NCBI GenBank assembly: GCA_025558095.1
Contig: JAIVFI010000014.1
Coordinates: forward strand, 620,001 to 684,000
Reading direction: 5' to 3'
Length of the DNA stretch: 64,000 nt
From: Hyaloraphidium curvatum SAG 235-1
Lineage: Eukaryota; Fungi; Monoblepharomycota
Shown: positions 10,161-31,250 of the stretch, in pieces
Layout of the letters: every line of letters starts with the position of its first letter
Numbering within the stretch: position 1 is the stretch's first letter
Program-made: the position numbers and the translations under genes
Notes under the pieces: generated by a model
The model's input: the letters and a program-made list of their open reading frames with translations, nothing else
Databases searched by the model: none
What the model was told of the DNA's origin: nothing

Positions 10161-11531
10161 ATGATGTCCTCCATGCCTTTCCCGAGGCGGTGGCGCTCCA
10201 TCGTGAAGCTCCTGTCGGTCGTCGCCTCCCTCCTCTTCGTCTCCTCTCGCGGCCTCCCCGAGATCGCGAACTTCTCCTCCCCGCCACCGGAATCGGTGCC
10301 GCTGCCCCGCAGCGTCCCGCCGCCCTGCGCGCCTCCGAACAGCTCCGTCGTGCTCCTAACCGGAGGCGCAGGCTTCATCGGCTCCTGGGTGGCCGAGGCG
10401 CTGCTCCGGCAAGGAAAGCACGTGGTCGTGGTGGATTCGCTCCAGCGGCGGGCACACGACATCGCCCTCCGCCGTCCCGGCCCTGTCATCGCGCGCAGGG
10501 ACATCACCCGCGAAAACACACCCAACCTCAGGCACCTCGATCGGCTGCTGGCGGAGGGGGATGTGCCGGGGAGCCTCGAGTTCCACCGTATCTCCCTCGA
10601 GGACTGCGATGCCGTGGGCGAGCTGTTCCGGCGGCACGAATTCGCCACGGTGATCCATCTCGCCGCGCTGGCGGGGGTGCGACGGAGCGTGGAGGACCCG
10701 CTGCCCTATGTGGACGCGAATGTCAGGGGTACCACGTGCATGCTCACCCACGTCTACGACCGGGCGAGGACCGCGCCGGAGATACGTTTCATCTACGCGA
10801 GCAGCAGCAGCGTTTACGGAGATAGGGTGGCAAGTTCCGGGGCCGGCGCGGCGGAAAGGCCCGACGGCGAGGCGTTCCTCGAATCCGATCACATCGAGCC
10901 TGAGGCCCTCCGGTCCCCGTACGCCGGTGGGTCCTCCGATCGCGCGTGCCTTCACATCCCCTGATGCCCTCCCCATGCAGCATCAAAGGCCGCGAGCGAG
11001 CTTCTCGTCCACACCTTCCACAACCTCCACGGCGGGCCCCCCGGCGCCCGCGTGGCCCCCAGCATCCTCCGCTTCTTCACGGTCTACGGCCCACGCGGCC
11101 GGCGGGACATGTCGCCCTTCCTGTTCCTCGACGCCGTCGCCAACGGCAGGCCGGTGCCGGTGAACGGCGTGGGGATGCGGCGGGAGCTCACGTTCGTCGG
11201 GGACGTGGCCGCGGGGATCATCAGGCTCGCCGAGGGTAGGGGACCGCCGCCCGGCGGGGCGCCGAGAACCTACAACATCGCGGGGGGGAGGGTGATCACC
11301 GTGGAGGAGATGCTGGAGCAGATCCACGGCACGTACGGGCGGCTCGCGGGGAAGCAGCAGCCGCTGACGATCGAGAGAAAGCCCGTGCCGCCGGGGGACG
11401 TGCCGTTCACGAGGGGGTCGATCGAGCGGGCCAGGGAAGACTTTGGGTACGCGCCCAACACGACTTTCGAGCGCGGGATCGAGGAGATGGTTCGCTGGTA
11501 CCTCGACGACTACGAGAAGGACGGGTTCTAG
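10161..11531 (+). CDS. Membrane-anchored extended SDR, UDP-glucuronate 4-epimerase (GAE/CapI)-like; intron 10927-10980
   Basis: N-terminal RRWRSIVKLLSVVASLLFV anchor; TGGAGFIG; HLAALAGVRRSVEDPLPYVDANVRG; YASSSSVYG; catalytic YAASK formed across the intron; LRFFTVYGPRGRRDM. Confidence 0.85.
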
Positions 11532-11681
11532 CCTGGCGGCAGGCTGGGTCACGCAACGAGCTAATACTGCAGCAGGGGGGCCCGAAGCGGTGGTATTTTA
11601 TTGGGGGAGGGGAAGATGCATGCAGTGCGAGCTGGGACATTGGCTTTCTTGCAGTATAGTGCGATAGATTGGTCTTGCATC

Positions 11682-13001
11682 TCATCTTTCGGCTGCGGCC
11701 CCTGGCCCCACCCTGGCCCGGGGAGCAGAAAGCGGCCTGCACGGCTCCCCCGGCAGCCCCCAATCGTCCTGGACCACGATCATCGTCCCGTGGGAATCCT
11801 CGCAGTCGGTCCGGTTCCGGAATACCACCAGGTCGTTGTAGTGGTTGATCCTGGCTCGCCTTCCGTCGGCGCGGATCGTCCTGGGCCTGCGGCCCGCGGA
11901 CGCGCGGAGGGCGAGCAAACGGTGCACGTCGGGCGAGGCCGCGGTCGAGGTGCGGAAGAAGGCCTTGGGGGTCTTCCTGCAGAGCTCGGGGAAACGCGTA
12001 GTGGGCAGCCCCTTACCCTTGTGGGGCTCCGGGGTGGTGAAGAAGGCGCGATCCAGGAGGATCGCGTCTGGCCGCGCGGGGTCGTTGAGGATGCCGGCGA
12101 GCGGCTCGTCGCCGCCGCGGCAGACGACGTACTCGTCCGGGTCAATGTGCAGCGCCCAGTCTGCCAATTCGCGGGCCACGGCAATGCAGTGGTGCAACGC
12201 GGCCGTTTGCTGGATGGCTCCCCGGGTCGCGGGTACGGGCATGCCGTGCCAGTGGGGAAAGTAGCGCAAGTCGCGGCCAGCTGCGCGCAGGGCGGCGGCC
12301 GTGGGAGCGAACGAGCCATCGACGTCGTACAGGACGCCGGCGTCGGCGGCGCGGTTGGCAAAGTGGTGTTCGAGCCAAAGCCGCGTGGCGTCGGGCAAGT
12401 GAGCCTCGAGCACCGAGCGATTGCGGAGGCCCTGTGAGCACAAGACCACCCTGCCCGCCGCGGCCGAGGCGTCGATGGCCACGACGTCCAGATCGAAGGC
12501 GGCGCGAAAACCGGCGTCGTCCGCGACTTCCACGTCCAACGAACGCCCGACCATGCCGCGTAGACGATCCAGGCCGGCCGCCGTCAGTGGGCACAAGAGG
12601 CGCGCCAGATCGCGATATTGCAACGGGAGGGATATTGCGGTACCCGAGCCCACGGCGCCTTTGGGGCCGAGCACAAAACTCGGCGGGAAGACGAACGCGT
12701 CCGATAGCGCGATGTTGCTGTTGCCGAGCCGGGGCTCGCCTTTGGTGAGGAAGAAGGCGAGCTCGAGGAACGCGGCGGCGTCTCCCTCGCGGTGGGACGC
12801 GTCCCAGTCGGGCGATGCCACGTCCAGCGACGCGGCGACGAGCGTCCACCCCGCACCGTGCACGGGGGCCCAGTTCCGCGTCCGCACGGCCAGTGTCCCG
12901 TCCGCCGGCGGGCCTGGCGCGCCCGGACCCGAAAGGAGAAACAGCGCCGGCAGCGCGAGCGCGGGTAGCGTCGCCCATGCGAGCACCGCACGGTGCTGCA
13001 T
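11682..13001 (-). CDS. GT-A-fold glycosyltransferase, GT92/DUF23-like family A copy 1, intronless type II membrane protein
   Basis: N-terminal hydrophobic anchor; WLEHH..ADAGVLYDVD; QTAALHHCIAVA..WALHIDPDEY (DxD); RINHY. Clear paralog of the genes at 16369 and 26441. Confidence 0.7.
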   Translation of the reverse strand: MQHRAVLAWATLPALALPALFLLSGPGAPGPPADGTLAVRTRNWAPVHGAGWTLVAASLDVASPDWDASHREGDAAAFLELAFFLTKGEPRLGNSNIALSDAFVFPPSFVLGPKGAVGSGTAISLPLQYRDLARLLCPLTAAGLDRLRGMVGRSLDVEVADDAGFRAAFDLDVVAIDASAAAGRVVLCSQGLRNRSVLEAHLPDATRLWLEHHFANRAADAGVLYDVDGSFAPTAAALRAAGRDLRYFPHWHGMPVPATRGAIQQTAALHHCIAVARELADWALHIDPDEYVVCRGGDEPLAGILNDPARPDAILLDRAFFTTPEPHKGKGLPTTRFPELCRKTPKAFFRTSTAASPDVHRLLALRASAGRRPRTIRADGRRARINHYNDLVVFRNRTDCEDSHGTMIVVQDDWGLPGEPCRPLSAPRARVGPGAAAER

Positions 13002-13119
13002 CGGGGGCGCCGTCACCGCGTGAGAGGAGCGGTGGGGGCGCTCGGCGGGGGTTTTCTTGGATTCTAATGAGGATCTACGCCGCGCGCGCTAGCGACCCCA
13101 CCTCGCCGCGCCCGTGATC

Positions 13120-13814
13120 GGGGAGCCGACTTCCTGCACGCCTTCACGTGCCCGATAATGGGCAAGGTTGCGCGGCACAACGCGCTTGAATCTGCGTTGG
13201 CGGATGAGCTCAAGGACAAGCTCGCCTCCCGTGGCGTGGTCGTCGACCGTCGTCATCGTGGTTACCTCGAGAATGGGTTCGTGCCCAAAGACACCACACT
13301 TGCACGAGCCCTGGACATCGGGAAAACCTCGACCGACATCGTCATCCGCCGCGTGGGCGCTCGTTCTGACCTCGTCGACGTCACCGTTGTTACCCCCAGC
13401 GTCACGGCCTCGCGCTCGACGGACTCCGGCAACGAGACCTCGCTCCTGCGCCGCGCTGTTCAGAAGAAGGCGACGGCCCTTGCCAACCAGTTCTACGTTC
13501 CCGATCCCCCCGTGCACAACCTCGTTTGGTTTGCGGTCTCGACCTTCGGCCGCCTGCACGACGCGGCGGACGAACAGCTCCGTGTTTGGTCTCGAGAGAT
13601 CTCTCCCCCGCGCACCAAATCCGACGGCAAAGACTGGGATGTCGATGGTTTCATGGCCCGCCAGACCGGCCGTCTGCGCGCCGTTGTTCAGCGGGGGCGC
13701 GTACTGGGTTGCCAACAGCTTATGAACAGGTTCAAGGAAGCCTGTACCCGGCAGCTCGGCGGACATCTAACCCCTCCCCTCTTCCCCGAATTCAATGTAT
13801 ATGGCGTGACGTGA
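13120..13814 (+). mobile_element. 5'-truncated non-LTR retrotransposon fragment with restriction-like endonuclease domain (CRE/R2-like)
   Basis: In frame: LHAFTC (end of CCHC knuckle), RHNAL, DIVI..DVTVVTP, QKKA, WFAVSTFGRL and LRAVVQRG, which follows the RLE motif order. No RT domain is present. Confidence 0.75.
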
Positions 13815-15009
13815 TGTATCGGGGTTGGGGGGCGCTCAGCGCCTGTGATAGAGATCTGATCGGGAGAGCGCAGGGTCCCCCCCACCGGCCTGGGACCCTC
13901 GCCTCTCCCGCCCACCAGGCCGGTGTGCTCAACACTTCTCTGCGCACGTGCTCAATAACTGCTCGCCTCGCTAATGTTCCTCCTGCTCTATGCGCTACTA
14001 CTACATGTGCTCAATCTTTCGTGCGCCGCCTAGAGGTCCCGCCGCGCTCACTCGATGGTCCACGCTCGTCCGACCTGTTGCTCTTCCTAGCCTTGCGCCA
14101 CGCTCTTCCGCGCATCCACACTCTCCGCCCGTCGGCTCCACTCCACTCGTCTGCCATCATCTACTATGCTTGCTCCAGACCGCTATTCTCTCCCCCGGTG
14201 ACGCTGACCGCCGCGTAACCAACGCCTCACGGTCCCGCGGTCCCAGTTTCCCCGAGACCCCTTGCCGCATGCACGTCAGGACCGCAATCTATCCCGAAAA
14301 GGCTATGCTCGACGTTATTTTTAGGCTTTGATCGATCTCGGGCATTTGCCCCGGACGCCGCGTCAGCCGATCGCGGCCGCTCCCTCCCGCTCGCCGACCC
14401 ACACGCAAATCCCTCCCGCCCTACAGCCCGCCAGCGCCGGCCCGCTCGCCGCCTTCAAGAACACGCCCGCGAGACCCGACCTCCAGGCCGCAGCGGCCCC
14501 GCCGACCCCCAACGCCCGTCAACAACCCCACTCACCTGTTTCCTCCTTTCCACTCCTTCCTCGTCGCCCTTCACCAACGCCGCGCCAACCATGAACAACG
14601 GCAACGCTCAACAGGTTAGTACCCTCTCGCGTGGTCCGGGTCTGGGGTCTTGGTCTACGGGGTCACCGCCACCGAGGTCGGGCTGCCGAGGCGCGCCGGT
14701 ACGTTCCCCTGCTCCTGGGAGTTTGCGGATCTCCCCCTAGTCGACGCCGGGATAACGGCGTGGCACCGTCTGCTGTTGGGGCGGACTGTTTCAGCCCGCG
14801 CAGATCGGTTGGCGCACTGCAGGATCTACAATCCGCAATCCGCGCGCAATTAGAAACCGCCCCTACGCCCCAAGAATAAACCCCTCATTGACATTCAAAC
14901 CAAAGGCGACCGGCGTTTTCTTGGACCTTGGAATCTCATCGGGTCCCGAAGAGCAGGCCGGGACTCCTCGATCGTCAAAAAATGGCAGGGCGACTAGATA
15001 AGCCACTTG

Positions 15010-15112
15010 GGACCGTCGAGGGGTTCCATCAGTGCGGCATCCTGGAGCTGGAAAGTCGGAATGCCACCGCTCGTTTCATCTGGAGCTCGAGCTAGTGACC
15101 ATGAGAGGAGAG
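15010..15112. repeat. Duplicated 3' flank of family A GT genes; copy at about 18177-18280, partial copy at about 16135-16210
   Basis: ggaccgtc..gggttcca.cagtgc...tcctggagctgga...tcggaatgcca.cgct...tcatctggagctc.ag.tag.gac.atgagaggag is shared between the copies. Confidence 0.85.
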
Positions 15113-15169
15113 ATATGCATCATGGAAAAGAGCCGAGACGACTCTCCAGGCATGTATTAGAGGTGTAGT

Positions 15170-15892
15170 TCATCCGCGCGTCCTCTCCGCTATCTCACCT
15201 GCCCTGCAGGGAGCCCAAAGCGATCTGCACGGCTTGCCAGGCAGCCCCCACTCGTCCGGGACGAGGTTCATCTTCCCGCCGGAAGCCACGCAGTCAGTTC
15301 GGTTCCGGAACCCCGACAGGTCGTTGTAGTGGTTGATCCTCGCCCGCGTGGCGTCGGCGCGGATCGTCCTGGGCCTGCGGCCCGCGGACTCGCGGAGGGC
15401 GAGCAGACGGTGCACGTCGGGCGAAGCCGCGGTCGAGGTCCGGAAGATGGCCTTGGGGATCTTCGAGGAGAGCTCGGGGTAGCGCGTGGTGGGCAGCCCC
15501 GGACCCTCGTGGGGCTGGCTCCTGGGTGGTGAAGAAGGCGCGATCCAGCAGGATCGCGTCCGGCCGCGCGGGGTCGTCGAGGATGCCGGCCAGCGGCTCG
15601 TCACCGCCGCGGCAGACGACGTACTCGTCCGGATCGATGTGGAGCGCCCAGTCGGCGCGCTCGCGGGCGAGGGCGAGGCAGTGGTGCAGCGCGGGGACTT
15701 GCTGCTTCGTGCGCGGGGGTTCGGGGACGGGCATGCCGTGCCACCGCGGGAAGTAGGTCACGTCGTGGCCGGCGGAGATGAGGGCGGCTGCAGGCGGGGG
15801 CGCCAGCCCCGCTCGCGAAAGGAGCCACAGGCACAGTCCCGGCAGCGCAAGAGCGGTAGAACCGCGTATGCCAGCGACGTACGGCAGCGCAT
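15170..15892 (-). pseudogene. Family A GT pseudogene with a large internal deletion and frameshift
   Basis: The 5' part (MRCRTSLAYAVLP) copies about 17600-17740 and is joined almost directly to the catalytic C-terminal half (TYFPRWHGMP..IDPDEY). Frameshift near 15520. Confidence 0.85.
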
Positions 15893-16368
15893 CGGTTCCA
15901 CCGCGACTCGTAGACGCCAGTCAGCCGTTGGTGTGAGCAATGGGACGCCGTTTTTTTCAGATCCTTCTCGGAGGAGCTAGCCATCCAGCTATCGCAGATC
16001 GTCGCGTCCCGTTCGCCGAGAGAGACCTGGGGATCCTGCAAGCCCCGTCGCTTGCCGTTTGCCCGTTGCAATGAATTCCGGGCCGTCACATCAATGTCCT
16101 GTCTCTTGGATCTGTTCCGATCCGTTCGTCATTCTGGACCGGTTCTGCGACAGGTGCAGATGAGTTTTGCGGCTTAATTCGTCTGGAGCTCAAGCTCGTG
16201 ACGATGGGAAAGAACACACAAAGGAATCGATCGAAAGTAAGGAATAAACGCCACTTGCGAGGTGCATGGGCAAGTTTGGAAGATCGCGCTTTCAAGTGCG
16301 CAAGGCCACGGGAGCTAATCGACCCATTCCCGACCATGCGCACGCACGCCACGCATCCGATACCCCGC

Positions 16369-17667
16369 TCAACCGCCCGCGCCCTCCCTCCCGCGTCGAT
16401 CCCGCGGCGGCCTGCACCGCTCCCCCGGCGGCCCCCAATCATCGACCACCAACGGCTTCCCCGTGTCCACACAGTCCGTCCTATTCCGCTGCCTGACCAT
16501 GCTCATGTAGTGGTTGATCCTCGCGGCGTTGGGGTCGGCGCGGACCGCGTACGGGGTGTGGCGGGAGGTGGATGCGCGGAGGCCGCGTAGACGGTGCACG
16601 TCCGGGGCGGACGAGGTGCGGGTGCGAAAGTAGGCTTTGGGTGCTTTCCAGCATAGGTCGGGGAAGCGCGCCGACACTGGGGAGGGGCCGCCGAGGTGCG
16701 TGAACAGTGCGCGGTCGAGGACCACCTCGTCCGGTTCATCGGGGGCGTCCAGGTAACCAGCGAGGGGGAACCCGGAGCGGCATACGACGTACTCGTCGGG
16801 GTCAATGTGCAGGGCCCATTCGGCCGATTCCCGCGCCACGGCGAGGCAGTGGTGCAACGCCGCCGTTTGCTGGGTCGTGTCGCGGGGAGACGAGACGGGC
16901 ATGCCGTGCCAGCGGGGAAAGTAGCGGACATCGCGGCCGGCGGCGACGAGTGCGGCAGCTGTCGGTGCGAACGAGCCGTCGACGTCGTACATTACAGCGG
17001 CGTCGGCGGCGCCGTTGGAGAAGTGATGCTCGAGCCAGAAGCGGGTGGCGTCGGGTATGTGGTTCTCAAGCGCGGAGCGGTTCCAAAGGGCCTGCGTACA
17101 GATCACGACCTTGCCGGCGCCGGCAGAGGGGTCGAGTGCGACGACGTCGAGCTCGAAAGCCGCCCGGAACCCGGCGCCGTCCGCGATTTCCACCGCCAGC
17201 GAGCGTCCCACAAAGCCCCGCAGCGAATGCAGATTGGCAGCCGTCAGCGGGCACAGCAACCGCGCCAGGTCGCGCGTGTGCGGCTGGACGGCGACCGCCG
17301 TACCCGCGCCCAGGGCCCCCTTTTCGCCCAGCGCGAATTTCGGCGCGGTCGAGAACGCGTCCGAAATGAGGATCACTTTCTGGCTAAGCCGGGGTTCGCC
17401 CGCGACGAGGAAAAACGCGAGCTCCACGAACACCGCCGCGCTCCCCGGCCGCCCCGTCGCGCTCCCGCCTGGCGACAGCACGTCCAGCGATGCGGCGACG
17501 AGTGTCCACCCCGCACCGTGCACGGGGGCCCAGTTTCGGGTCCGCACGCCGAGCACCGCGCCTGCCGGCGGCAGCGGCGGGCCCGGACCCGAAAGGAGCC
17601 AGAGATACAGCGCTGGCAGCGCGAGCGCGGGCAGAACCGCGTACGCCAGCAATGTACGTCGGCGCAT
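16369..17667 (-). CDS. GT92/DUF23-like family A copy 2, intronless
   Basis: MRRRTLLAYAVLPALALPALYLWLL anchor; WLEHHFSNG; ALHHCL; HIDPDEY; RINHY. Confidence 0.72.
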   Translation of the reverse strand: MRRRTLLAYAVLPALALPALYLWLLSGPGPPLPPAGAVLGVRTRNWAPVHGAGWTLVAASLDVLSPGGSATGRPGSAAVFVELAFFLVAGEPRLSQKVILISDAFSTAPKFALGEKGALGAGTAVAVQPHTRDLARLLCPLTAANLHSLRGFVGRSLAVEIADGAGFRAAFELDVVALDPSAGAGKVVICTQALWNRSALENHIPDATRFWLEHHFSNGAADAAVMYDVDGSFAPTAAALVAAGRDVRYFPRWHGMPVSSPRDTTQQTAALHHCLAVARESAEWALHIDPDEYVVCRSGFPLAGYLDAPDEPDEVVLDRALFTHLGGPSPVSARFPDLCWKAPKAYFRTRTSSAPDVHRLRGLRASTSRHTPYAVRADPNAARINHYMSMVRQRNRTDCVDTGKPLVVDDWGPPGERCRPPRDRRGREGAGG

Positions 17668-18323
17668 CGGTTCCGCCGCGACTCGTGGACGCCAGTCAGC
17701 CGTTGGTGTGAGCAATGGGACGCCCTTTTTTTCAGATCCTTTTCGGAGTGCGAGTCCGACACACATTGCACACAGCCGGTGGTCCCCATACCCGTAACCC
17801 AGGCATGTAGAGAGGCGCGATATCGCCGACGCCCGTGCAGGATCAAACCGAGCCCGCTCACCGTACTGCTGCCGCCATGCCCGTGCCGCCTGCCAGCCGT
17901 GAATGATGCTCACCTGAAAGAAGTCCGGAGGGGGGCCGTCGGGGTTAGAGTTGCCGGGGTGGCTGTAGTAGCCGTTGTAGGGGTACAAAAGGGCAGTAAA
18001 CGTCAGGAAATCGCAGCTGGCAGGCGGATCTTGGCGGCACGCGGCAGCGAGGCGACAGACGGCGGCGGCGGTGACGGTGGCAGATTGGGTCCTGAAACCA
18101 GGCGGGGACACAGTTAGTTCGATCGCCCAAAAACCTGGTAGAGCGAGTAGATCAGTTTGCATCTTGAAGTGAGCTCTGGACCGTCACGGGTTCCACCAGT
18201 GCACCGTCCTGGAGCTGGACACTCGGAATGCCATCGCTAGTATCATCTGGAGCTCAAGTTAGAGACGATGAGAGGAGGGACGCATCACTCAAAAGAGCGA
18301 GATGATTAGATGTGGATTATCGT

Positions 18324-18590
18324 TTATCCATCATCCGCAGCGTCCGCTACCTCGCCCGCCCCAGCCCGAGGACCCCGAAGCAGCCTGCACGCCTCCCCGG
18401 GCGGGGCCCACTCGTCCCGCACCACGATCATCTTCCCATGGGAATCATCGCAGTCGGTCCGGTTCCGGAACCCGCCAGGTCGCTGTAGTGGTTGATCCTC
18501 GCCCGCGTGCCGTCGGCGCGGATCGTCCTGGGCCTGCGCCCCGCGCACGCGCGGAGGGCGATCAAAAGGTGCACGTCGGGCGGGGAAACT
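18324..18590 (-). pseudogene. 3'-terminal fragment of a family A GT gene, frameshifted
   Basis: PDVHLLIALRACAGRRPRTIRADGTRARINHY, then in another frame FRNRTDCDDSHGKMIVVRDEW. Confidence 0.85.
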
Positions 18591-18691
18591 CGAGGCGGCC
18601 CGCACTTCGGCACCCACTAATCGACCATGGCCAGCTTACCCGCATGGACGCAGTCCTTCCTGTTCCGGGGCTTTGGATGCAGCGACGGTCC

Positions 18692-20446: not shown

Positions 20447-20515
20447 CCGGCTGGCTTATCACCACGGTCAACAAATCCCTTGTTGTCCCCAAGTTGACCC
20501 GCCGTCCTTGCGAGC

Positions 20516-21652
20516 ATGCGCCGCCGCCGCTGGTCGCCTGTCGCCCTCCTCGCGGCCGCCGCGGCGCTGCTCCCCTTCCTCGTCGGTCCGCCGCGCCCGC
20601 CGCCGGCGCCGCCGCCCCCGCCGCGGGTGCCGTGCGGCCTGCGGGTGCTGCTGATCGCCTCGCCCCGCGGGAACAGGACCTACGGGAGCACCGTGATGCG
20701 CGGCCACATGGTCGCCGAGTCTCTGTCCCGCCTCGGCATCCCCGCCCGGGTGGCCTTCGAGAACGATCACTCCGTCTGGGAGGGGAACCTGCGCGGCACC
20801 GCCTGCGTGTTCCTGAAGCGCGCCCTGCGCGAACAGCTCGCCCACATGTGCCGCGGGAAGGGCGGCGCGGTGGTGCACGACGCGCTGGACGCGCTGCCGT
20901 GGTACCAGGAGCAGGGCGCGAAATGGGCCGACGCGGTGCTGGCCAACTCGGCGGCCCACGCGGCGTGGCTGAGGACCAAGGGCGCGAGGGAGGCCAGGGT
21001 GGCGTGGCACCACCACTCCAACGTCTTTGGCGTCAGACGGGACCCGGGGAGGCCGGTGAAGACGGTGTGCTTCACCGGCAGCCCGCTCAACGCGCTGCAG
21101 CCCGCGAAGGAGGCCGCGCTCTCGGCCGAGGCCCGCAAACACGGGCTGGAATACCGCTTCCTCCCCGTGCCCCTCGAGGTCGAATCCGGGGAGCCCGGGC
21201 CCCCCGACGATCCCTACAAGCAGCTCGTCGCCCTGCGGCCGCTGGCCGGGTGCGACGCGGGGCTGATCTGGCCGCGGGACGAGGACGTGTTCACGCTCAA
21301 GCTGAGGCCGGTGACGCGGTTGGTGACGTGGTGGTCGGTCGGCGTGCCGACGGTGTTCTTTCCCTACGCGCCGTACATGGAGGTGTCGGAGGGGATGCCG
21401 GTCAGGCTGGCCGCGAGCAGCGTGGAGGAGGTCGGGAAGCACCTCGGGTGGCTGGCGGACCCCAAGAACGCGGCCGAGGTGAAGGCGCTGGTGGACGAGC
21501 AGCTCGCGAGGGCGGAGAAGTTCACGGCGAACGCGCTGGCGCCGGCGTACGCGGGGGCGCTGTGCGGGATCATCGCGGGGCTGAACCGGACCGCTTCCCT
21601 GCCCGCGCGGGGCGATCCGGGTGCCGCGGCCGTCGCAAAGCAGGGTGCGTGA
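20516..21652 (+). CDS. Type II membrane protein, putative GT-B glycosyltransferase (family C), intronless
   Basis: MRRRRWSPVALLAAAAALLPFLV plus a Pro stem; STVMRG; VFLKR; VVHDALD; ADAVLANS; VCFTGS; RPVTRLVTWWSVGVPTVF, a layout seen in bacterial GT4-like proteins. Confidence 0.55.
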   Translation: MRRRRWSPVALLAAAAALLPFLVGPPRPPPAPPPPPRVPCGLRVLLIASPRGNRTYGSTVMRGHMVAESLSRLGIPARVAFENDHSVWEGNLRGTACVFLKRALREQLAHMCRGKGGAVVHDALDALPWYQEQGAKWADAVLANSAAHAAWLRTKGAREARVAWHHHSNVFGVRRDPGRPVKTVCFTGSPLNALQPAKEAALSAEARKHGLEYRFLPVPLEVESGEPGPPDDPYKQLVALRPLAGCDAGLIWPRDEDVFTLKLRPVTRLVTWWSVGVPTVFFPYAPYMEVSEGMPVRLAASSVEEVGKHLGWLADPKNAAEVKALVDEQLARAEKFTANALAPAYAGALCGIIAGLNRTASLPARGDPGAAAVAKQGA

Positions 21653-21744
21653 GCGGTGTACGGCACAGACGGGGAACACGGTCGGATGCGAACGCGACGC
21701 AGCCCCGTCCGAGGCTCCGCGGTCCGGCCCTCCTCTGCGGGCAG

Positions 21745-23730
21745 CTACCCCCCCTCCCCACCCCCGTCCTCCCCCTCGCACTCCCCCGGCAGCGCCTCCT
21801 CCATCCTCACCGCATCATACAGCACCCCCGCCCTCCACCCGTCCCCCCTTAGCACCAATCCCACCTCGTTCCCTCCCACCCTCATCCTATCCGGGGGCAC
21901 GCACGCCTCCAGCCGCATGACGCTCCCCGCGACCCCATCGCGGTGCATCACCTGGTCCACCGGCAGGGGATACACGGCCAGCGGGTGCCCGTTGTGCAGG
22001 ACGGTGAGGTTGCCCCCGTTGCTGCCGCACAGCGCGACGCGGAGCACGGCGCCGCGCGCGGGGACCGAGGCGAGCTCGTACGCGACCGTGCGTGCGGTGG
22101 GGAGGGGGAGGCCCGAAGGGGAGAGGGAGATGGGGTGCGCGTAGGGCCAGTCCCTGTCGTGTTTCCCGCGGCCGACGTCGAACCGCACGCCGGAGGGGAA
22201 TGCGGCCGCGGCGCGGGCGTAGGCGCCCTGCACGAAATGCTGATCGGCGCCGAAAAACTCCCGCGCGGTGCGGTCGAACTCGCCGACCTGCCACAGGATC
22301 CGCCCCCCGCGCGGCGTCCACTCCAGCTCGCGCAGGTTGACCGCCTGCCCGAGGGAGAGGTTCAGCGCGGCGGGGAGGCGGTAATCCTCCGCCGTGCCGT
22401 CCGCCAGCGCGACCAGGCGGTAGCTGCCCGGCCTGACGTTCGCGATTTCGAAGGAGCCGACGGGGTCGGCGCGCGTCCAAAATTGGTACCCCGCCGCGTC
22501 GCGCTGCCAGTCGTCCGCGCGCGGCGGTACCAACCCGACCCACGCGCCCGATGCCGACAATTGGGGCAGGCGCGGGTCGGAGAGGAGGAGGCGGCCCCGC
22601 ACCGATGCGCGGGATGCCGCAGGGGGGTAAAGCGGGTCGTCCACCCAGGCAAAGGGCCACCCGGCCTTGAGCCCCGCGGCCATCCGCGCCGCGTCCCGCG
22701 CCTGCCTCTTATGCCGCCACCAGGCGGGGCCCCAACCCCCCTCGGTGAGGAGCACGGCGAACGGCCCGTAGGCTTTCGCCCATTTCTCGTCGCGCGCGAG
22801 GACGACGTGGCCGCCGCCGTAGTGCTCGCTGTGGAAGTAGTCCAGCAGCACCGGCCCCTCCCCCCGGCCCTCCCTGCTCCCAGCCGTGACGTTGGCCGCC
22901 GTGTTGCCCGGGCCCTTGCGGAAGTCCAGGTGGCCCGTGAGGTCCGTGCGGAGCGGGCCGCCGCCGAGGTACTCTGCCGACGGGTTGGCGATCCACGCCC
23001 CCGCGTGCAGGGACGGGCTGGTCCACCCCCACGCGTCCAGGGTGCCCAGCCGCGCCGAGTAGCGGTACTTGTGCTCCACGCGGCCGCGGAACGGGCCCGT
23101 GCGCAGGGTGCGCGCCTCGGGGAGGTCCGGCAGCGGCACGCCGAGGTCGAAGTCGCCCTGCGCCGGGACGGGCCCCGTGCGCTCGGCGTCGACGTGCAGG
23201 GCGGTGAAGTTGCGGTTGAGGAAGAGGTGGAAGCGCGACTCGGCGATGCGCAGCGCGGGGCCCTTGGGGGGGCGGCGCAGGGCGGCGCGGACAAAGAGGG
23301 CGTCGCTGCCGGGGCGCAGGGCGTAGGCGACGTCCAGCTGCAGGGCCAGCGAGCGGTTTGCGCGGAGGTCCGTTGTGCACGCGGCCTCCACGCCGCCCCC
23401 GGCGACCCTGCGGAGGCGGACCCTCCCCCGGCCCGCCCGTGCGGGGCGCGGCACCTCGTCCGGCCGGCCGACGTGCGCCGACACGCCGCCGCCGCGGGAG
23501 CCGAGCAGCTCCGCGCCTGTGAACGCGAGCGACACAAGCGCGCAGCCGGCCGCCGAGACGCGCGCGCGCACGCGGCCGTTGGAGAGCTCGGCGCGGCGGC
23601 CCTTCGAGTCCCCGCGGGCCGATACGCGCTCGGGGGGGCGTTCGCGGGACCACGGGAGGGCAAAGAACGCCACCAAACCGCAAAACAGCACGCATGCTGC
23701 GGCGATGCGGCGGCGGCGGGGCCGCGGCAT
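21745..23730 (-). CDS. Polysaccharide lyase family 4 (rhamnogalacturonan endolyase) with N-terminal membrane anchor, intronless
   Basis: HKYRYS, WIANPSAEYLGGGPLRTDLTGH, FHSEHYGG, WAKAYGPF, WPFAW, YQFWTRAD..F.IANVRPGSY, LWQVGEFDRTAREF and LYDAVRME. N-terminus MPRPRRRRIAAACVLFCGLVAFFALPW. Confidence 0.9.
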   Translation of the reverse strand: MPRPRRRRIAAACVLFCGLVAFFALPWSRERPPERVSARGDSKGRRAELSNGRVRARVSAAGCALVSLAFTGAELLGSRGGGVSAHVGRPDEVPRPARAGRGRVRLRRVAGGGVEAACTTDLRANRSLALQLDVAYALRPGSDALFVRAALRRPPKGPALRIAESRFHLFLNRNFTALHVDAERTGPVPAQGDFDLGVPLPDLPEARTLRTGPFRGRVEHKYRYSARLGTLDAWGWTSPSLHAGAWIANPSAEYLGGGPLRTDLTGHLDFRKGPGNTAANVTAGSREGRGEGPVLLDYFHSEHYGGGHVVLARDEKWAKAYGPFAVLLTEGGWGPAWWRHKRQARDAARMAAGLKAGWPFAWVDDPLYPPAASRASVRGRLLLSDPRLPQLSASGAWVGLVPPRADDWQRDAAGYQFWTRADPVGSFEIANVRPGSYRLVALADGTAEDYRLPAALNLSLGQAVNLRELEWTPRGGRILWQVGEFDRTAREFFGADQHFVQGAYARAAAAFPSGVRFDVGRGKHDRDWPYAHPISLSPSGLPLPTARTVAYELASVPARGAVLRVALCGSNGGNLTVLHNGHPLAVYPLPVDQVMHRDGVAGSVMRLEACVPPDRMRVGGNEVGLVLRGDGWRAGVLYDAVRMEEALPGECEGEDGGGEGG

Positions 23731-24257
23731 GCTCGGCCGAAAGTGAATCCGCCCGGAAGTGTATTGACGAAGCGATGTAAACAATAAAGGGGGAGGTCGA
23801 TCCCCAGCAGGCATCCCCATCGTCCGATCCCGATCGGCACCGATCCGTCCTGCTCACGATGCAAGCAGGAGGATGTTGCGCCGGGGGAGGTCGCCTTCCT
23901 GCGGCGTGACCGTGATCGATCTCGGGGGACGGCCGGGCGCGAACCGCACGCAACGGCATCCGGGCGGGCCGATCGCCGCCGTCCCAGCGGGCAGCCGCAG
24001 CAGGGAGAGGGAGCAGGAGGCGAGCAGCAGCCGGTCCGCGGGTGCCGGATGGGCGATCCGCGCGAGGTTCGGCCGGCGGCGTAATTGTCTTTTGGTCCCT
24101 TCCCGGTTCCCGATAGTGCCTCGTCCCCCTCGTCCCCCGCCGCAGGCCGCCGCGCGACCGCTTCCCCGCCCGTGCAGCCCTCGAGCCCCGCTGCACCCGC
24201 GATGCGCGCCTGAGCCGGCCGATGCCGTTGCGGTCGCCCCTCCCCGACCCGCAAGCG

Positions 24258-26057
24258 ATGCCGCCCTTTTGGCGGAAGCGCCGCGTGCTCCTCGCCGCCG
24301 CCGCGGTGCTCGCCATGCTGCGCCTGCGTGCCGAGGCTGGCGGCGGGCCGGGACCGGGCGGCACGGGCGCGATGGCCGCCGCGGACGCTCCCCCAAGGGA
24401 GGATCGGTCGGGTGCCGCGGTCTACGTCCTCTACCCGCACGGCCGCCACACCGCCTCCGGCGGCCCGTCCACCCTCCACCTGTGGCACTCGGCGGTGCTG
24501 GCCGCCGGCTTCCGCGGGGGCATGTTCGGCGCCAACCCCGAGGCCTACGGGCCGGAGTACTCCCCGCTGCGGCCGCTGCCGGACTGGCCGCCGCCCGATC
24601 TGGCCGAGGGGGACGTGGTGCTGTTCCCCGAGTACCTGGCAAAGGAGGACGGGTGGCTGCCCAGGATCGCCGCGATGAGGGGGCTGGGCGTGCGGACCGT
24701 CGCGCTGGTGCTCGGCGCGACGACGGACCCCCGCGAGCTGGCCGACCGGCTGCGCGGGTGGGCCGCCGCCGTCGCCGTGACCGACACCCTTGCCGCGGCG
24801 ATGGGCATGATGCGCGGCACCGTCGCCCGCCCGATGCTGCCCAGCGCCTACAGGGCCGCGGAGGAATGCTGGGCCGGCACGCTGGACTGCCCCGGCCGGC
24901 CGGGGGACTGCCGCCGCAAGCGCGACCTCGTGATCCTGGACAACGAGGAACCGCTGCTCCCCGACGCGGTGGTCGAGCGGATCCGCGCGCTGCGCAGCCC
25001 CCCCGTGGAGGTGATCCAGCTCCGGCCGTGGGGCGGCCGGCTGACGCAGCAGGCCCTGCGGTGCGCGCTGGCGGACGCCAAGGCGTTCGTGGACCACACG
25101 TTCCCGGGGCACGAGAGGGGGCCGTTCGAGGCCGCGATGATGGGCGCGGTGCCGGTGGTCCCCGACGGGCCCGTCGCGGGGCAGGATTTCAAGGTGGACA
25201 CGCCCGTGCCGGACGCCTACCGCGCCAAATTCTGGAAGGAGGACAACGTGTGGATCGCCCGCAGTGCCTCGGATTTCGCGGACGGCGGCGCGGTCGTGGA
25301 CGCCGTGGACCGCGCGCTGCGCGCCGTCGACACCGCCTCGTGGGGAGCAGGGAACCCCGTCCTCCGCAGGGCAAACGGCGTGCGCGCCGCGTGGCCCGCG
25401 GAATCCGCCGCGTGGCTGTCCAGCATCCGCCTCTTTGTCGCGATCGCCGTCCCCGCGGGCGGGGAAGCAGCGGCCGCCGCCTCGGCAGCGGCATGGATCG
25501 CGCACCACCGCCTCGCCACCGTCTTCCTCCTCCTCCCCTCCCCATCCTCCTTCCTCGCCTCCCCTGCGGCGGCGGCGCTGAACGCCTCCCTCCTCCTCGG
25601 CCCCTCGGTCGTCCCCCTTCCCCTGCGCACCGGAACCGAGTGGCCCGGCGCCCGCATCCCGGGGGGATCGACGGTGCTCCTCGCCCCCCCCGACGCGGTG
25701 CCGCTGTCCCGGGGGGTGGTGCAGAAGATCGAGGAGGCGCTGGAGGGGGCGGCCGAAACGGAGCTGCGCTGGCGGTGGGGACGGGCATCCGCACGGACGG
25801 CGCGGTGGGACCTGGCACCGTGCGGCCCGGGCGCCGGCGCGATCCTCGCCTTCCGCCTCGGCACCGCGCCCGTGCCCGCCGGCGCGATCGTCGCGCTGCC
25901 GCCCCCGATCGCGGCGCGGGAAGCGGGCGGCGGCCACGGCGGGGGAGCGCTGTTCGTCCGCGGGTCGGCGGCGTGCGCGGCGCGGGGGGAGGGCAAGGGG
26001 ACGCTGGCGGGGTGGATGCCGGAGGGGATGGGGGAGCTGCGAAGGTTGTTGGCGTGA
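24258..26057 (+). CDS. Family B GT-B-like protein copy 2, intronless
   Basis: Full-length paralog of 18692-20446: SGGPSTLHLWH, GDVVLFPE, AKAFVDHTFPGHERGPFEAAMMGAVPVV. WRKRRVLLAAAAVLAML anchor. Confidence 0.6.
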   Translation: MPPFWRKRRVLLAAAAVLAMLRLRAEAGGGPGPGGTGAMAAADAPPREDRSGAAVYVLYPHGRHTASGGPSTLHLWHSAVLAAGFRGGMFGANPEAYGPEYSPLRPLPDWPPPDLAEGDVVLFPEYLAKEDGWLPRIAAMRGLGVRTVALVLGATTDPRELADRLRGWAAAVAVTDTLAAAMGMMRGTVARPMLPSAYRAAEECWAGTLDCPGRPGDCRRKRDLVILDNEEPLLPDAVVERIRALRSPPVEVIQLRPWGGRLTQQALRCALADAKAFVDHTFPGHERGPFEAAMMGAVPVVPDGPVAGQDFKVDTPVPDAYRAKFWKEDNVWIARSASDFADGGAVVDAVDRALRAVDTASWGAGNPVLRRANGVRAAWPAESAAWLSSIRLFVAIAVPAGGEAAAAASAAAWIAHHRLATVFLLLPSPSSFLASPAAAALNASLLLGPSVVPLPLRTGTEWPGARIPGGSTVLLAPPDAVPLSRGVVQKIEEALEGAAETELRWRWGRASARTARWDLAPCGPGAGAILAFRLGTAPVPAGAIVALPPPIAAREAGGGHGGGALFVRGSAACAARGEGKGTLAGWMPEGMGELRRLLA

Positions 26058-26440
26058 TGGCGCGGTGCCGGGGAGGCGCGCGGTGCGGCACGACCGTCCG
26101 GGGTGTTGTATATCGAGGGATGCTTCCCTGTTTATGGAGTTTACGTCTTGGGCCTGCTCGATCGGGGCCCGGCAAGCAAGAAGGAGCCGATTTGCAGGGA
26201 TTGACCCGTGTGACCCTGTGAACCCTGGTTCGGTCTGGTCTGGTTTTCCGCCGGCGTCGTACCACAAGAATAAACCGATGCCACTGGACCGATTAGGTTA
26301 GGATTGTCCGTCCCGGGTTCGGTGGAGGGACGCTGGGAGGCGGAGCTATAGGCTGGACGCAGCGCTGGACGAGGTGGTTTTTGCGCGTGTTGCGGCCGCG
26401 GCCAAATCAACACCGGCAGCGGAGGCGGGCGAGCCGGCCG

Positions 26441-27778
26441 ATGCGAAGGCGCGCGGCGCTGACGTGGACCGCCGTACTGGCGGGGGTGTGGCTACTGCGG
26501 CCGGTTCCGCGGGCGCCGGGGCCGGCGGGTCCGCCACGGATCCCGGGGGAAGGCGAGGTCGCCGTGCGGACACATAATTGGCAGCCGGTGCACGGCGCGG
26601 GGTGGACGCTGGTGGCCGCGTCGCTGGACGTGCTGGGCGGGATCGCGGTGCCGGGGAACGGGACGGGGACGGCGGGGGGCGGCGACGCGGCCGCGGTCGT
26701 CGAGCTGGCCTTCTTCCTCGCGGGGGGGGAGCCCCGCCGCAGCGAGCTGGTGCAGCTCGTTTCGGACGCCTTCGAGCGCCCGCCCGAGTTCGTGCTGGGC
26801 GACGGAGGGGCCGTGGGATCGGGGACCGCCGTCGCCCTCAAGCAGGAGATGCGCGACCTGGCGCGGCTGCTGTGCCCGCTCACCGCCGCCGGCCTGGAGC
26901 GGCTGCGGGGGATGGTCGGACGCCGGCTGGCGGTGCAAGTCGCGGACGGAGCGGGGTTCCGCGCCGCGTTCGACCTGGACGTCGTCGCGCTGGACCCCTC
27001 TGCCGCCGCGGGCAGGATCGTCCTGTGCACGCAGGTCCTGCGCAACCGCTCCGTGCTCGAGAACCGCGTGCCCGACGCCACTCGCATCTGGCTGGAGCAC
27101 CATTTCTCCAACGGGGCCGCGGACGCCGCGGTCGTGTACGACGTCGACGGCAGCTTCGCGCCCACCGCCGCCGCCCTCGTCGCACGCGGCCGCGACGTGA
27201 CCTACTTCCCGCGGTGGCACGGGATGCCCGTCCCCGCCCCCCCGGGAGGCATCCAGCAGGTCGCCGCGCTGCACCACTGCCTCGCCCTCGCCCGCGGGCG
27301 GGCCGAATGGGCGCTGCACCTCGACCCGGACGAGTACCTCGTCTGCCGGCGCGGGCACCCTCTCGCACGCATGCTGGGCGATCCCGCGCGGCCGGACGTC
27401 GTGCGGCTCGAGAGGGCCTTCTTCACGCACCCCGAGCCGGCGGCGGGGGGGGACTTCGCGCGGACGAGGTTCCCGGAGCTGTGCTGGCGCACGCCCAAGC
27501 CGCTCTTCCGCACCTCCACTGCCGCCTCGCCGGACGTGCACAGGCTGTTCTCCCTGCGCGCGTCGGCGGGGGGCGGGAAGCCGCGGGAGCTGCGCCCCGG
27601 CGCGGGGGCGGCGAGGGTGAACCACTACTTCGACATGGTGGCGTTCAGGAACAGGACGGACTGCCAGAGGAGCGAGGAGGAGGGGACGGGGTGGCCGGTG
27701 GTGGTGGAGGACGGGTGGGGGCCGCCGGGGGAGGAGTGCAGGCCGCCCCGGGCGGTCTCGGATGCTGCGGAGGGGTGA
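26441..27778 (+). CDS. GT92/DUF23-like family A copy 3, intronless
   Basis: MRRRAALTWTAVLAGVWLL anchor; VRTHNWQPVHGAGWTLVAASLDV; ALHHCL; HLDPDEY; RVNHY. Confidence 0.72.
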   Translation: MRRRAALTWTAVLAGVWLLRPVPRAPGPAGPPRIPGEGEVAVRTHNWQPVHGAGWTLVAASLDVLGGIAVPGNGTGTAGGGDAAAVVELAFFLAGGEPRRSELVQLVSDAFERPPEFVLGDGGAVGSGTAVALKQEMRDLARLLCPLTAAGLERLRGMVGRRLAVQVADGAGFRAAFDLDVVALDPSAAAGRIVLCTQVLRNRSVLENRVPDATRIWLEHHFSNGAADAAVVYDVDGSFAPTAAALVARGRDVTYFPRWHGMPVPAPPGGIQQVAALHHCLALARGRAEWALHLDPDEYLVCRRGHPLARMLGDPARPDVVRLERAFFTHPEPAAGGDFARTRFPELCWRTPKPLFRTSTAASPDVHRLFSLRASAGGGKPRELRPGAGAARVNHYFDMVAFRNRTDCQRSEEEGTGWPVVVEDGWGPPGEECRPPRAVSDAAEG

Positions 27779-28637
27779 GGGGCGGGGCGGGTGCGTGCCC
27801 CGCGGATGTGGCAGGCTGGAAGCTGGTGCTCGGTAGTTTGTATTGCGATATTCATTGGTCACGCAAAATATGTGGATGCGAACGCCCGGCGTGGCAGCCA
27901 GACCGCGGCGCGATAAGCGAGGCGAAAGGCGGCCCCCATCCGGGCCCGCAAAGCAAGGGAGAAACCGCCGTTTTTTGCTATCTCTACGGTCCGTGGGATC
28001 CAAACCAAGGCATGTCATTGATTTGATTGTGAATGTTGGGCATCGCCCCGGGCGGCAGGGGTCTGGCCACGTCGCGACAATTGGATCGAGCTAGCCGGCC
28101 GCCACTCCACACCGTTACCGTATCAAAGCCGTCTGATTCGGTGATTGCGCCATCCGGACGGTTCCAATTGCACGTGTTTGAGGGGGCGCCGAATCAGGTG
28201 CGTGAGGCTGGGAGGCTGGCACAGTGCGAACCAGTTCAACCAATCGATTGGGCGGTTTCCATTTTGGGCCGACTTCCATCCCCCGCCTCCGCGCCCGTCA
28301 TCGCCGCGCGGGCCCCGGGCCACCGACAGCGACGCGCGCATGCCGCTCGCCCCGCGCGGAGTGCCGCCGAGGGAGCGCCGCTGCTGATTGCGCGGCCCGC
28401 GGGATCGCCCGCCCAAACAACGGCGCCATCGCCCGCGCGCAGCCACCGCGCCGCACGCCGCGCCGCACAGCGAATCGCGGTCGGCGCCGCTCTCCGCTGG
28501 CGCCGGCGCCGCCCGGCCGGGACACCCCGGCGGGCAAACACGGAGGCCAAACACGGACGGGCTAACACCCCAACAACAACGGGCCTAGCCGACGCCCGGG
28601 CACTCTAGGGCCCCTTCGCCCTATTTAAACAACGGAC

Positions 28638-31250
28638 ATGGACCCCGAGGAGCCGCGCGAGGCGCCGTCGCCGAAGCACGCGCACCGCCGCAAGCTGTCG
28701 GCCGTCGGCCTGGCCTTCCCGGCCCCGCAGCCGCACGTCGCCGGCCAGGCCTCGCTGCTGGTGCCCGACGCAGCCTACTCGATGCCGCACCCGTCGCAGG
28801 GCTCGGCCGTGGCCGCATACGCCGGCTCGTCGCAGCTGCACCACCGCGACGTGCACCACCACTACGGCGGCGCCGCCGCGACCACCGCGGTCAACTACCG
28901 CGGCTCGCTGGCCAGCCTGTCGGGCATCGCGCCGGACCCGGAGGACGACAAGGCCCGCAAGGCCATGCTGCACTCGGCGCACACGTCCATCGGCGTGACG
29001 GGCTTCGTCGAGGGATACCCGCTGGGCATGGACGGCTCGCGGCCCGCGTCGCCGGCATCGGACTCGACCGTCTCCACCGTCGTGTCGGTCGCCACCTCCG
29101 GCACCCCGACCTCCTCCTCCCCCTCGAGCCCGTCCTCCCTCTCCCCGCCCTTGCTCCCCGCCGAACCGCCGCTGCACCCCATCCTCGGCCTGAACGGCTA
29201 CAAGGCCGGCAAGACCTCCCCGCCTCCCCCGTACTCGTACCACAAGGGCGGCCAGCCCTACTCGCCGACCGCCAGCAGCCCCGGCCCCGGCATCCCCTCC
29301 TTCTCCTCGTACCCGTACCCGCGCTTCTCGGCCCCGCCGAAACGCCCCGGCGCCCGCGGCCGCCGCGCATGCGCATCGCTGCGCGCGCCGAGCTGCTCCG
29401 CCCTGGGCCGCATCGCGCGGTACGCCGCCGTGCTCTACGCCGCGTGCACGGTGGTGTTCACCACCTGGCACCTGGCCTCGCCGTACCTCTCCCCCGCATC
29501 CAAGGCGGTGCGGATCGAAGTGCAGCCCGACGCCGCGCCGCCCGCGCCCGCCGTGGCGCCGCAGGCGTGGCGGGACGCGGAGGATCCGGCGAGGAGGGAC
29601 AGGATGCGCGGGTTCGCGCCGGCGAGGCCGGCGGAGGTGGTTCCCGAGAGGGAGAGGGAGAGGGCGAGGGAGAGGGAGGAGAGGGAGAGCAGGGTTGCCG
29701 AGAGCTTGAGGGCGCGCGAGAGGGAGAGGGAGAGGGAGAGGGAACGGGAACGGGAACGGGAACGGGAGAGGGAGAAGGAGAGGGAGAGGGAGGAGGCGGT
29801 GCCCGTGCCCGCGGTTCCCGTCGTTCCCGTCGCCCCTGCATCGGCGGCGCCGGCGGTCGAGGAGCAGGAGGACAAGCCGGCCGCGGCGCCCGCACCCGCG
29901 GAGGCCGAGAAGCCGGCCGCGGAGAAGGCGGCGCCGGCGGTGGTGGCGGCGCCGGCGGTGGTGGCGGTGCCGCCGACGACGCCGGGGACGATGGTGCCGG
30001 CGACGGCGGTCGGTGAAGGTGAGGGGCGTTGGCGCGTGCCGAAGGCCCGAAGCTGATTCGTGTTGTTCCGTCCCAGGTATCTTCGACTACGCGAGCAAGG
30101 ACTTTATGCTGTCGAAGCTCTTCCAGTTCGCCATGAAGCCGTACCGCATCGAGCCCTTCTACATCCGCGCCGAGGAGCGGCCCGACGCCGGGGACATCAC
30201 CATCACGACGATGCTGGACCCGTCGCGCTACGACCGCCTGCTCAAACTGGTGTACCAGTACCGCGGCCCCATCTCGGTGACGATCCACATCCAGGACGAC
30301 GAGGAGAACCAGGTCGAGGAGGCCATTGCGGACCTGGACGAGCTGGTGCACCAGCACCCCATCCTGGCCAAGTACGTCGACGCGCACCTGCTCATCGACC
30401 GGTTCGACCGGCAGTTCAACCTGTGGCGCAACGTGGCGCGGTTCTTTGCCCGGAGCAAGTACGTCGTGCAGCTCGACGTGGATTTCTTCGTGTGCACGGA
30501 CTTCCGCACCTCGATCCTGGGCAACCCGGAGCTGCTCCGCAAGATGGACCGCGAAAAGGCCGTGCTCGTCATCCCCGCCTTCGAGTTTTCCAACGAGCTC
30601 GCGCCGCGCACCGAGGCGGACCGCTTCCCGCGCACCAAGGAGGCCATGGTGGACGCCTACAAGCGCGGCGAGATCGCCGTGTTCCACGCCGACTGGGAGC
30701 GCGGGCACGGGCCGACCGACTACGGGCGGTGGTTCCGCGCGCGCGAGGCGTACCAGATCTCGACGTACAACTTCAACTACGAGCCCTACGTGGTCATGCG
30801 CCGCGACGACCCGCCGTGGTGCGACGAGCGGTTCGTGGGGTACGGAAGCAACAAGGCCGCGTGCCTGTACGAGATTTACCTCGCGGGGTACGAGTTCTGG
30901 GTGCTGCCGGGGGATTTCTTGATACACCAGTGGCACGAGTACCCGTCGGAGGAGCGGACCGCCGAGGTTGGTTTTCCCGTGTGCATGGGGACGAGATTGG
31001 AAGCTGACCCCATCCTGTCATGCAGCGCCGGTACAACCGCCGCCTCTACGAGACCTTCCGTGAGGAAACCTGCTTCCGGTACAACCGCGTGCTGCAGATG
31101 GCCTCGGGCGGCTCGGACACGGACCTGCTCGACCGGCTGGACTGCATGCAGTTCGCCAAGGCGCACATGAGCCACGGGCTCATCCGGTCCGCGGACGGCA
31201 GGGCGATCGCCGAGGCGGGGGAGGAGGAGGTGCGGGATCGTGGGCTGTGA
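28638..31250 (+). CDS. GT49-family glycosyltransferase (LARGE/B4GAT1-like), introns 30013-30076 and 30967-31025
   Basis: Long S/P-rich N-terminus, TM (YAAVLYAACTVVFTTW), then DITITT, YRGPISV, FNLWRNVAR, QLDVDF, VIPAFE, YEPYVV, PWCDERFVGYGSNKAAC and FLIHQWH. Confidence 0.9.
29646..29792 (+). repeat. Coding hexanucleotide microsatellite (GAGAGG/GAACGG)n encoding an Arg-Glu repeat stem
   Basis: Directly visible; translates to ERERERARE...REREREKERE. Confidence 0.9.

Follow-up and report, generated by a model that had tools for sequence, protein, structure and literature searches.

Fungal walls are commonly seen as chitin, glucan and mannan. To our knowledge, few pathways for acidic polysaccharides have been defined genetically in fungi, and clustered ones are rarer still, with the galactosaminogalactan (GAG) cluster as the main example. 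In Aspergillus fumigatus, this cluster comprises uge3, gtb3, agd3, sph3 and ega3. Here, we report on a locus of Hyaloraphidium curvatum in which nine intact glycan-enzyme genes lie next to one another, at positions 10161–31250 of the window analyzed (C14:620001–684000, a stretch of 64,000 nucleotides within the 31.9-Mb, 55-contig assembly), between an ERCC1-like gene (8438–9307) and a dispersed 7-transmembrane-like gene (31489 onward). H. curvatum, whose name paralogs of the cluster proteins bear in public records, is a fungus that was formerly taken for a green alga. It lacks a flagellum, is related to the Monoblepharidomycetes, has a stacked Golgi and reproduces by autospores (PMC6899921). 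The interpretation towards which we lean, with modest confidence, is that the locus is a secretory-pathway or Golgi cluster that builds and trims a uronic-acid glycan, in a manner analogous to the GAG cluster.

The GAG cluster, as we know it, resembles the H. curvatum locus in being a fungal cluster that joins a nucleotide-sugar 4-epimerase with one or more glycosyltransferases (GTs) and with membrane-anchored polymer-cleaving enzymes. The two have, however, no family in common. A GalE-type epimerase, one large GT4-type synthase and enzymes of the GH135 and GH114 families make up the GAG cluster, whereas H. curvatum combines a GAE-type epimerase, a GT49, GT92-like enzymes, new GT-B proteins and a polysaccharide lyase of family 4 (PL4), with no deacetylase. 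The implied polymer would be anionic, in contrast to the cationic GAG.

The plant machinery for rhamnogalacturonan I (RG-I) consists of GAE1-6, GALS (GT92), RRT (GT106), RGGAT (GT116), GAUT (GT8) and apoplastic PL4 lyases. It has in common with the locus a type II-anchored GAE-type epimerase, a GT92-related domain and a PL4 that probably belongs to the plant/bacterial type with PF06045. By contrast, the plant genes are dispersed, and the H. curvatum cluster contains no homolog of GT8, GT106 or GT116; the pectin- or RG-I-like product that had been proposed for it in the original prediction is not supported. The bacterial alginate operon (algD-A, with AlgL) likewise encodes together the supply of a nucleotide uronic acid, transferases and a lyase that acts on the nascent polymer. 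The H. curvatum locus differs from it by its Golgi-type layout, by separate promoters on both strands and by the lack of a synthase/exporter complex, and its lyase belongs to PL4 instead of the PL5 family of the alginate operon. The human matriglycan polymerase LARGE1 (GT8 + GT49) shares with the GT49 of the locus a DxD-containing GT49 domain, type II topology and a stem region; the H. curvatum protein lacks the GT8 xylosyltransferase domain and has instead a long, unrelated cytosolic N-terminus.

Gene content and layout of the locus

Six unrelated glycan-enzyme families are contiguous across 21 kb. Tandem duplication is no explanation for such a side-by-side placement, and chance is very unlikely to account for it, by a rough estimate rather than a formal test. 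The locus opens with the gene of an extended-SDR, GAE-type epimerase with a type II anchor (exons 10161–10926 and 10981–11531, + strand), followed by two paralogs of a GT92-related family with a GT-A-type DPDEY motif, GT-A1 (11682–13016, −) and GT-A2 (16369–17667, −). FamB1, an unclassified GT-like protein with a predicted GT-B fold (18692–20446, −), is encoded head-to-head with a 378-aa, putatively GT-B (GT1/GT4)-like protein (20516–21652, +), across a spacer of 69 bp. The second half of the locus contains the gene of a PL4 rhamnogalacturonan-lyase-type protein (21745–23820, −), FamB2 (24222–26057, +), which is recognized as a paralog by its identity to FamB1, GT-A3 (26441–27778, +), likewise a paralog of GT-A1 and GT-A2, and a GT49 of about 831 aa (exons 28638–30018, 30077–30966 and 31026–31250, +).

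The nine genes are all there, intact and where the original prediction placed them, and the stretch also encloses two GT-A pseudogene fragments and one unassigned 218-aa open reading frame (ORF). The first fragment (15197–15809, −), found by six-frame reading and a protein search of the own genome, is a frameshifted C-terminal half that retains 63–75% identity to GT-A in two frames; the second (18345–18589, −), detected in the same protein search, corresponds to the last ~80 residues. The locus appears to have undergone birth-and-death evolution, as suggested by these two decayed fragments together with inverted GT-A/FamB pairs. These pairs flank the 378-aa and PL4 genes, and PL4 occupies the center of the inverted duplication. 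The 218-aa ORF (13158–13814, +), which matches nothing in Pfam or NCBIfam, has a lower GC content at third codon positions (GC3 0.73).

The GC content of the window is high (63–77%), which gives rise to many spurious ORFs in every region; coding frames were therefore chosen where GC3 far exceeds GC2, the value at second codon positions. The cluster genes have GC3 values of 0.78–0.95, in line with host genes. All seven core genes (11682–27778) are intronless, and the epimerase and GT49 genes that surround them contain introns, as do the more distant genes for a Zn2Cys6 protein and a transporter (see below).

All nine products display an Arg-rich N-terminus followed by a single hydrophobic segment, which spans residues 14–32 in the epimerase. 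The arrangement that had been predicted, a single N-proximal transmembrane segment behind an Arg tail, is thus found throughout, with the qualification that the segment of GT49 comes only after ~260 residues that are predicted to be cytosolic.

The enzyme families

The epimerase was assigned from Pfam and PDB matches and from sequence motifs. Its 54-nt intron (10927–10980, GT..AG) was read from the DNA; the exons of this gene, of GT49 and of the Zn2Cys6 gene were searched one by one, unjoined. The Pfam families Epimerase and GDP_Man_Dehyd match with E values of 1e-26 to 1e-28. Both exons have PDB entry 5u4q as their best match (E 1.9e-17 for exon 1 and 3.5e-19 for exon 2), which we take to be a Klebsiella Uge-type enzyme, the label of the entry itself naming just a dehydratase. 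The next matches of exon 2 are the UDP-glucuronic acid (UDP-GlcA) 4-epimerases MoeE5 and 6zl6, and exon 1 also matches GalE well. The Rossmann GxxGxxG motif and the catalytic Ser/Thr...YxxxK triad occur as GGAGFIGS, SSSSVYG and YAASK, a set that spans the splice junction. Together with FFTVYGPRGRRDM, they form invariant columns in alignments with named UDP-glucuronate 4-epimerases. The stretch FFTVYGPRGRRDM aligns to the FFTVYGPRxRPDM motif of 5u4q and six named UDP-glucuronate 4-epimerases, with R39 and R41 invariant.

In the UDP-glucuronate 4-epimerase of Bacillus, the carboxylate is gripped by a Ser/Thr network and Arg185 (PMC12338863), and the residue numbering of that enzyme, including Arg185, may be carried over to the H. 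curvatum epimerase, where the Ser/Thr cluster and the Arg of the FFTVYGPRxRPDM motif would be the counterparts. The motifs and the PDB matches group the protein with UDP-glucuronate 4-epimerases, in agreement with the GAE-type enzyme that had been proposed, and membership in this family appears well founded; UDP-GlcA along with UDP-galacturonic acid (UDP-GalA) would be the presumed substrates. UDP-glucose dehydrogenase-type genes were found in the genome and could supply UDP-GlcA.

An ortholog of the epimerase is encoded on contig L008 (Logan SRR26194948; GC 53%), which derives from another organism, and is positioned head-to-head with the closest homolog of FamB. Identities to the H. curvatum proteins are 42–47% for the epimerase and 38% for FamB. 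The L008 epimerase is full length and intron-free, has the N-terminal anchor and two insertions as in H. curvatum, and its named best matches are nearly all UDP-glucuronate 4-epimerases (31–37% identity). The segment L008:8263–13971 comprises the epimerase and FamB genes, followed by that of a type II fucosyltransferase-like protein, with a borderline match to xyloglucan fucosyltransferase (GT37); a gene for a 726-aa protein comes next. Apart from this epimerase–FamB adjacency, no independent evidence was found that ties members of the cluster to one another.

The two FamB proteins of the locus are 38–42% identical, and the genome holds four copies of the family, which has no Pfam or NCBIfam match. 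The AlphaFold2 model of FamB1 has a mean predicted local distance difference test (pLDDT) score of 86.4 and a predicted template modeling (pTM) score of 0.86. For this model, Foldseek gave 133 matches in the PDB (E ≤ 1e-3), and GT-B glycosyltransferases constitute nearly all of the 44 matches listed (E ≤ 2.5e-4). In the Atlas, Glycos_transf_1 clusters resemble FamB1 in shape, with template modeling scores by target of 0.67–0.85, and an extra C-terminal domain is present at about residues 382–584. Relatives are scarce, only ~10 falling below 1e-10 among 1.8 billion representatives, and these are found on eukaryote-like contigs. Judged by the model, FamB is an unclassified family with a GT-B glycosyltransferase fold, which is recognized here for the first time. 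Homologs of FamB are located on L010, L011 and L012, which are compact, gene-dense eukaryotic metagenome contigs, beside PGK, CAP and SYS1 genes. Because the gene density of these contigs looks picoalga-like, FamB is probably not confined to fungi.

The 378-aa protein is encoded by a single-copy gene. It has no match in PDB, Pfam, NCBIfam or PADLOC, and is unrelated to FamB by both BLAST and hhalign. Its Atlas features reach 0.95, and 184 of 256 are common to bacterial 'glycosyltransferase family 1' clusters. The three GT-B-like proteins that had been predicted for the locus are, accordingly, not one family of three: the GT-B fold is retained for FamB1 and FamB2 on the strength of the model, and the proteins fall into two sequence-unrelated families.

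GT-A1, GT-A2 and GT-A3 are ~67% identical in pairwise comparisons and have the DPDEY motif in common. The ratio of nonsynonymous to synonymous substitution rates (dN/dS) among the three paralogs is ~0.35, and the copies are under purifying selection. The open frame of GT-A2 reaches 18162, and its start is likely the Met that precedes the anchor. Matches to Pfam families remain below threshold, namely Glyco_tranf_2_4 on GT-A1 (25.7 bits, below cut-off) and PF01697 (GT92) on GT-A (16.6 bits, with a cut-off of 23). A genome scan with PF01697 (E ≤ 1) revealed at least nine canonical GT92 loci elsewhere, and the GT-A genes of the cluster were not among its matches. With hhalign, the GT-A profile aligned to a profile of four of the genome's own canonical GT92 proteins at a probability of 97.5% (E 7e-12, 227 columns). 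The sole PDB profile match is the plant galactan synthase GALS1 (8d3t), around DxDEY, with a non-significant E value of 0.68. Homology to GT92, as originally predicted, is thus upheld by the profile comparison, and the further suggestion of a GALS-like galactan synthase is not, given the scores below the Pfam cut-off and the canonical GT92 loci elsewhere. The comparisons place GT-A as a divergent branch with kinship to GT92, restricted so far to this species, and not as an ortholog of GALS. At C34:196300–202100, a fourth GT-A paralog is flanked by the gene of an FAD-binding oxidase and by a GT4 gene in divergent orientation; the three form a second small glycan-gene grouping.

The PL4 protein has above-threshold Pfam matches to domain II (PF14686, fn3-like; 56.6 bits) and domain III (PF14683, CBM-like; 64.2 bits). 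Its profile matches 1NKG/2XHN in the PDB at E 5.5e-8, and a single-sequence PDB search gave no match. Residues 41–407 have no Pfam match even at E 10, PF06045 included, and residues 79–420 align with 30–36% identity to bacterial proteins. The catalytic domain I family PF06045 is carried by two environmental PL4 homologs (P0005 and P0006). The invariant motifs of the N-domain, RVEHKY, NPSxEY and TGHLD, are intact. Over residues 79–676, the protein is 30–36% identical to PL4s of Verrucomicrobiota, Planctomycetota, Acidobacteriota, Chthonomonas and Bacteroidales. The catalytic Lys and His of Aspergillus aculeatus RGL4 are K150 and H210; for domain I and 1NKG, no sequence alignment was obtained. 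The N-terminus comprises an Arg-rich segment and a hydrophobic segment of 19 residues, and 23730 is the probable start of the 661-aa version given in the database. Based on the Pfam domains and the identity across residues 79–676, the predicted PL4 lyase can be described as a full-length enzyme of the bacterial/plant type, a description made here for the first time. The cluster copy is the sole PL4 locus of the genome.

GT49 matches PF13896 with 180 bits, above the cut-off, and its introns (30019–30076 and 30967–31025) were placed by splice sites read from the DNA. Exon 2 aligns with the GT49 domain of LARGE1 (E 1.5e-28, 103 bits), with LDVDF opposite the DxD-containing SDIDF. The protein consists of the long N-terminus described above, one transmembrane segment, a Glu/Arg-rich stem and the LARGE1-like domain. 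This match to the glucuronyltransferase domain of LARGE1 bears out the GT49 assignment of the original prediction at the sequence level.

The proposed pathway and its alternatives

In the pathway that we propose, UDP-GlcA would be made outside the locus by UDP-glucose dehydrogenase, and the membrane-anchored GAE-type epimerase would turn part of it into UDP-GalA. GT49, the three GT-A proteins, the two FamB proteins and the further GT-B-like enzyme would then add GlcA or GalA and neutral sugars, acting presumably in the Golgi and on a common product. The membrane-tethered PL4 would cut the resulting uronic-acid polymer by β-elimination, a cleavage that may trim or free chains, or may loosen the mother-cell wall for the release of autospores.

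Several observations weigh against this pathway. A search of the literature found no report of a GalA/GlcA polymer or of wall chemistry in Hyaloraphidium, nor of such a cluster in a chytrid. Five of the nine genes derive from two locally duplicated families (GT-A and FamB), so that a count of nine overstates independent clustering. The identity of the epimerase to named enzymes is merely 33–48%, and for this reason its substrate is one that we infer. Assignment of the 378-aa protein to GT-B is weak, as it derives only from language-model features, and an AlphaFold2 model of GT-A built from four paralogs was unusable (pLDDT 35). Relatives of GT-A outside H. curvatum were not found in a word-based protein search and a metagenome pattern scan. 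The N-terminus of PL4 may be a signal anchor or a cleavable signal peptide, in which case the enzyme could be secreted. Finally, linkage in another organism was seen for the epimerase–FamB pair of L008 and for no other pair; in the contigs examined, the remaining FamB homologs lie among housekeeping genes.

Alternatively, the genes may serve a common pathway that decorates glycoproteins or glycolipids in place of making a wall or mucilage polysaccharide, for example with a GlcA-containing O-glycan similar to the LARGE product matriglycan, which we regard as unlikely but plausible. The GT49 of the locus matches LARGE1, the builder of a protein-bound glycan, its long cytosolic N-terminus is typical of Golgi glycoconjugate enzymes, and GT92 and GT4-like enzymes frequently act on glycoconjugates. 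A polysaccharide lyase, on the other hand, implies a repeating uronic-acid polymer as its substrate, and seven GTs with duplications suit a polymer with side chains. Taking the polymer further, to an own rhamnogalacturonan- or pectin-like acidic polysaccharide of wall or sheath, made in the stacked Golgi by clustered non-plant GTs, among them a new GT-B family and a divergent GT92 branch, and to a membrane-tethered PL4 that remodels this polymer or dissolves the mother wall at autospore release, appears rather unlikely. The pectin/RG-I label is weak because it derives only from the family name of PL4 and the distant kinship to GT92. Short-chain dehydrogenase/reductase (SDR) paralogs on C8 and C33 were considered as UDP-rhamnose enzymes, and NCBIfam did not resolve their SDR subtype.

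The lyase could also be a secreted pectinase with a nutritional role, acting on the pectin of algae or plants in the way proposed for the relative Gonapodya, that merely lies among GT genes with no single pathway between them; this we consider quite improbable. Chang et al. (2015) reconstructed PL4 among the pectin-specific families of ancestral fungi, and Gonapodya, which has 27 pectinases, grows on RG-I (PMC4494064). The nearest homologs of the H. curvatum enzyme occur in polysaccharide-degrading bacteria, one of them in a catabolic-looking operon, and the possible signal peptide mentioned above would fit a secreted enzyme. Yet other pectinases are sparse in the H. curvatum genome, with no CE8, one weak GH28 match and one PL1, and the lyase has both the N-terminal layout of its GT neighbors, with an Arg-rich anchor, and the central position in the inverted GT-A/FamB duplication. 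An origin as an island of genes that were acquired or duplicated independently and share no function is, in our assessment, very improbable. Such an origin would fit the intronless state of the seven core genes amid intron-bearing neighbors, the turnover indicated by the pseudogene fragments, the bacterial nature of the nearest PL4 kin detected and the bacterial clusters matched by the features of the 378-aa protein. The identity of PL4 to its bacterial homologs is, however, so low that any transfer of this gene must be old. Moreover, the GC3 of the cluster genes is that of host genes, FamB, GT49 and GT92 are eukaryotic families, the GT-A copies are kept by purifying selection, and the adjacency of epimerase and FamB is maintained in L008.

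If the uronic-acid glycan pathway holds true, its combination of a UDP-GalA supply of the Golgi type with a lyase and seven GTs would make an unknown glycan directly accessible to genetics in a lineage that has been little studied. The pathway would also provide the first functional context for FamB as an unclassified eukaryotic GT-B family that is present in picoalga-like genomes as well, and it bears on the question of whether PL4 genes of early fungi always signal feeding on plant or algal pectin.

Flanking genes and repeats

Two genes downstream of GT49 could be accessory to the cluster, and nothing ties either of them to it. One encodes a possible Zn2Cys6-type transcription factor (34572–36845, +), recognized from the pattern CxxCx6Cx7C...Cx6C read from the sequence and from a Pfam Zn_clus match of 17.3 bits that is confined to the domain's first half. 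A short in-frame intron (GTGGGT...TAG) interrupts the zinc cluster, and its removal restores CX2C. The donor hexamer GTGGGT of this intron is identical to that of the epimerase intron. The other is a multi-exon gene of the DMT/nucleotide-sugar-transporter family (39032–40582, +), partly contained in an ORF, with a Pfam UAA match of 33.3 bits (cut-off 26.2).

The multi-pass membrane genes at 31489–33070 (+) and 41089–42720 (−) were rejected as members of the cluster, as they belong to a dispersed family of at least 80 copies. In the own genome, 88 matching stretches were listed for this family, from 727 first-look candidates, and we interpret them as 80 or more loci distributed over most contigs; the family is very large and lineage-specific. 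Further members in the window are located at about 5004–6155 (−) and 6591–8015 (+); the proteins of all four loci are ~500–540 aa long and have no Pfam match. The 14-mer AAGCTATGGCACGA occurs twice just past the stop codon of GT49, as exact copies at 31282–31295 and 31332–31345 (+), and once more at 42967–42980 (−), which amounts to three matches where 0.25 are expected by chance.

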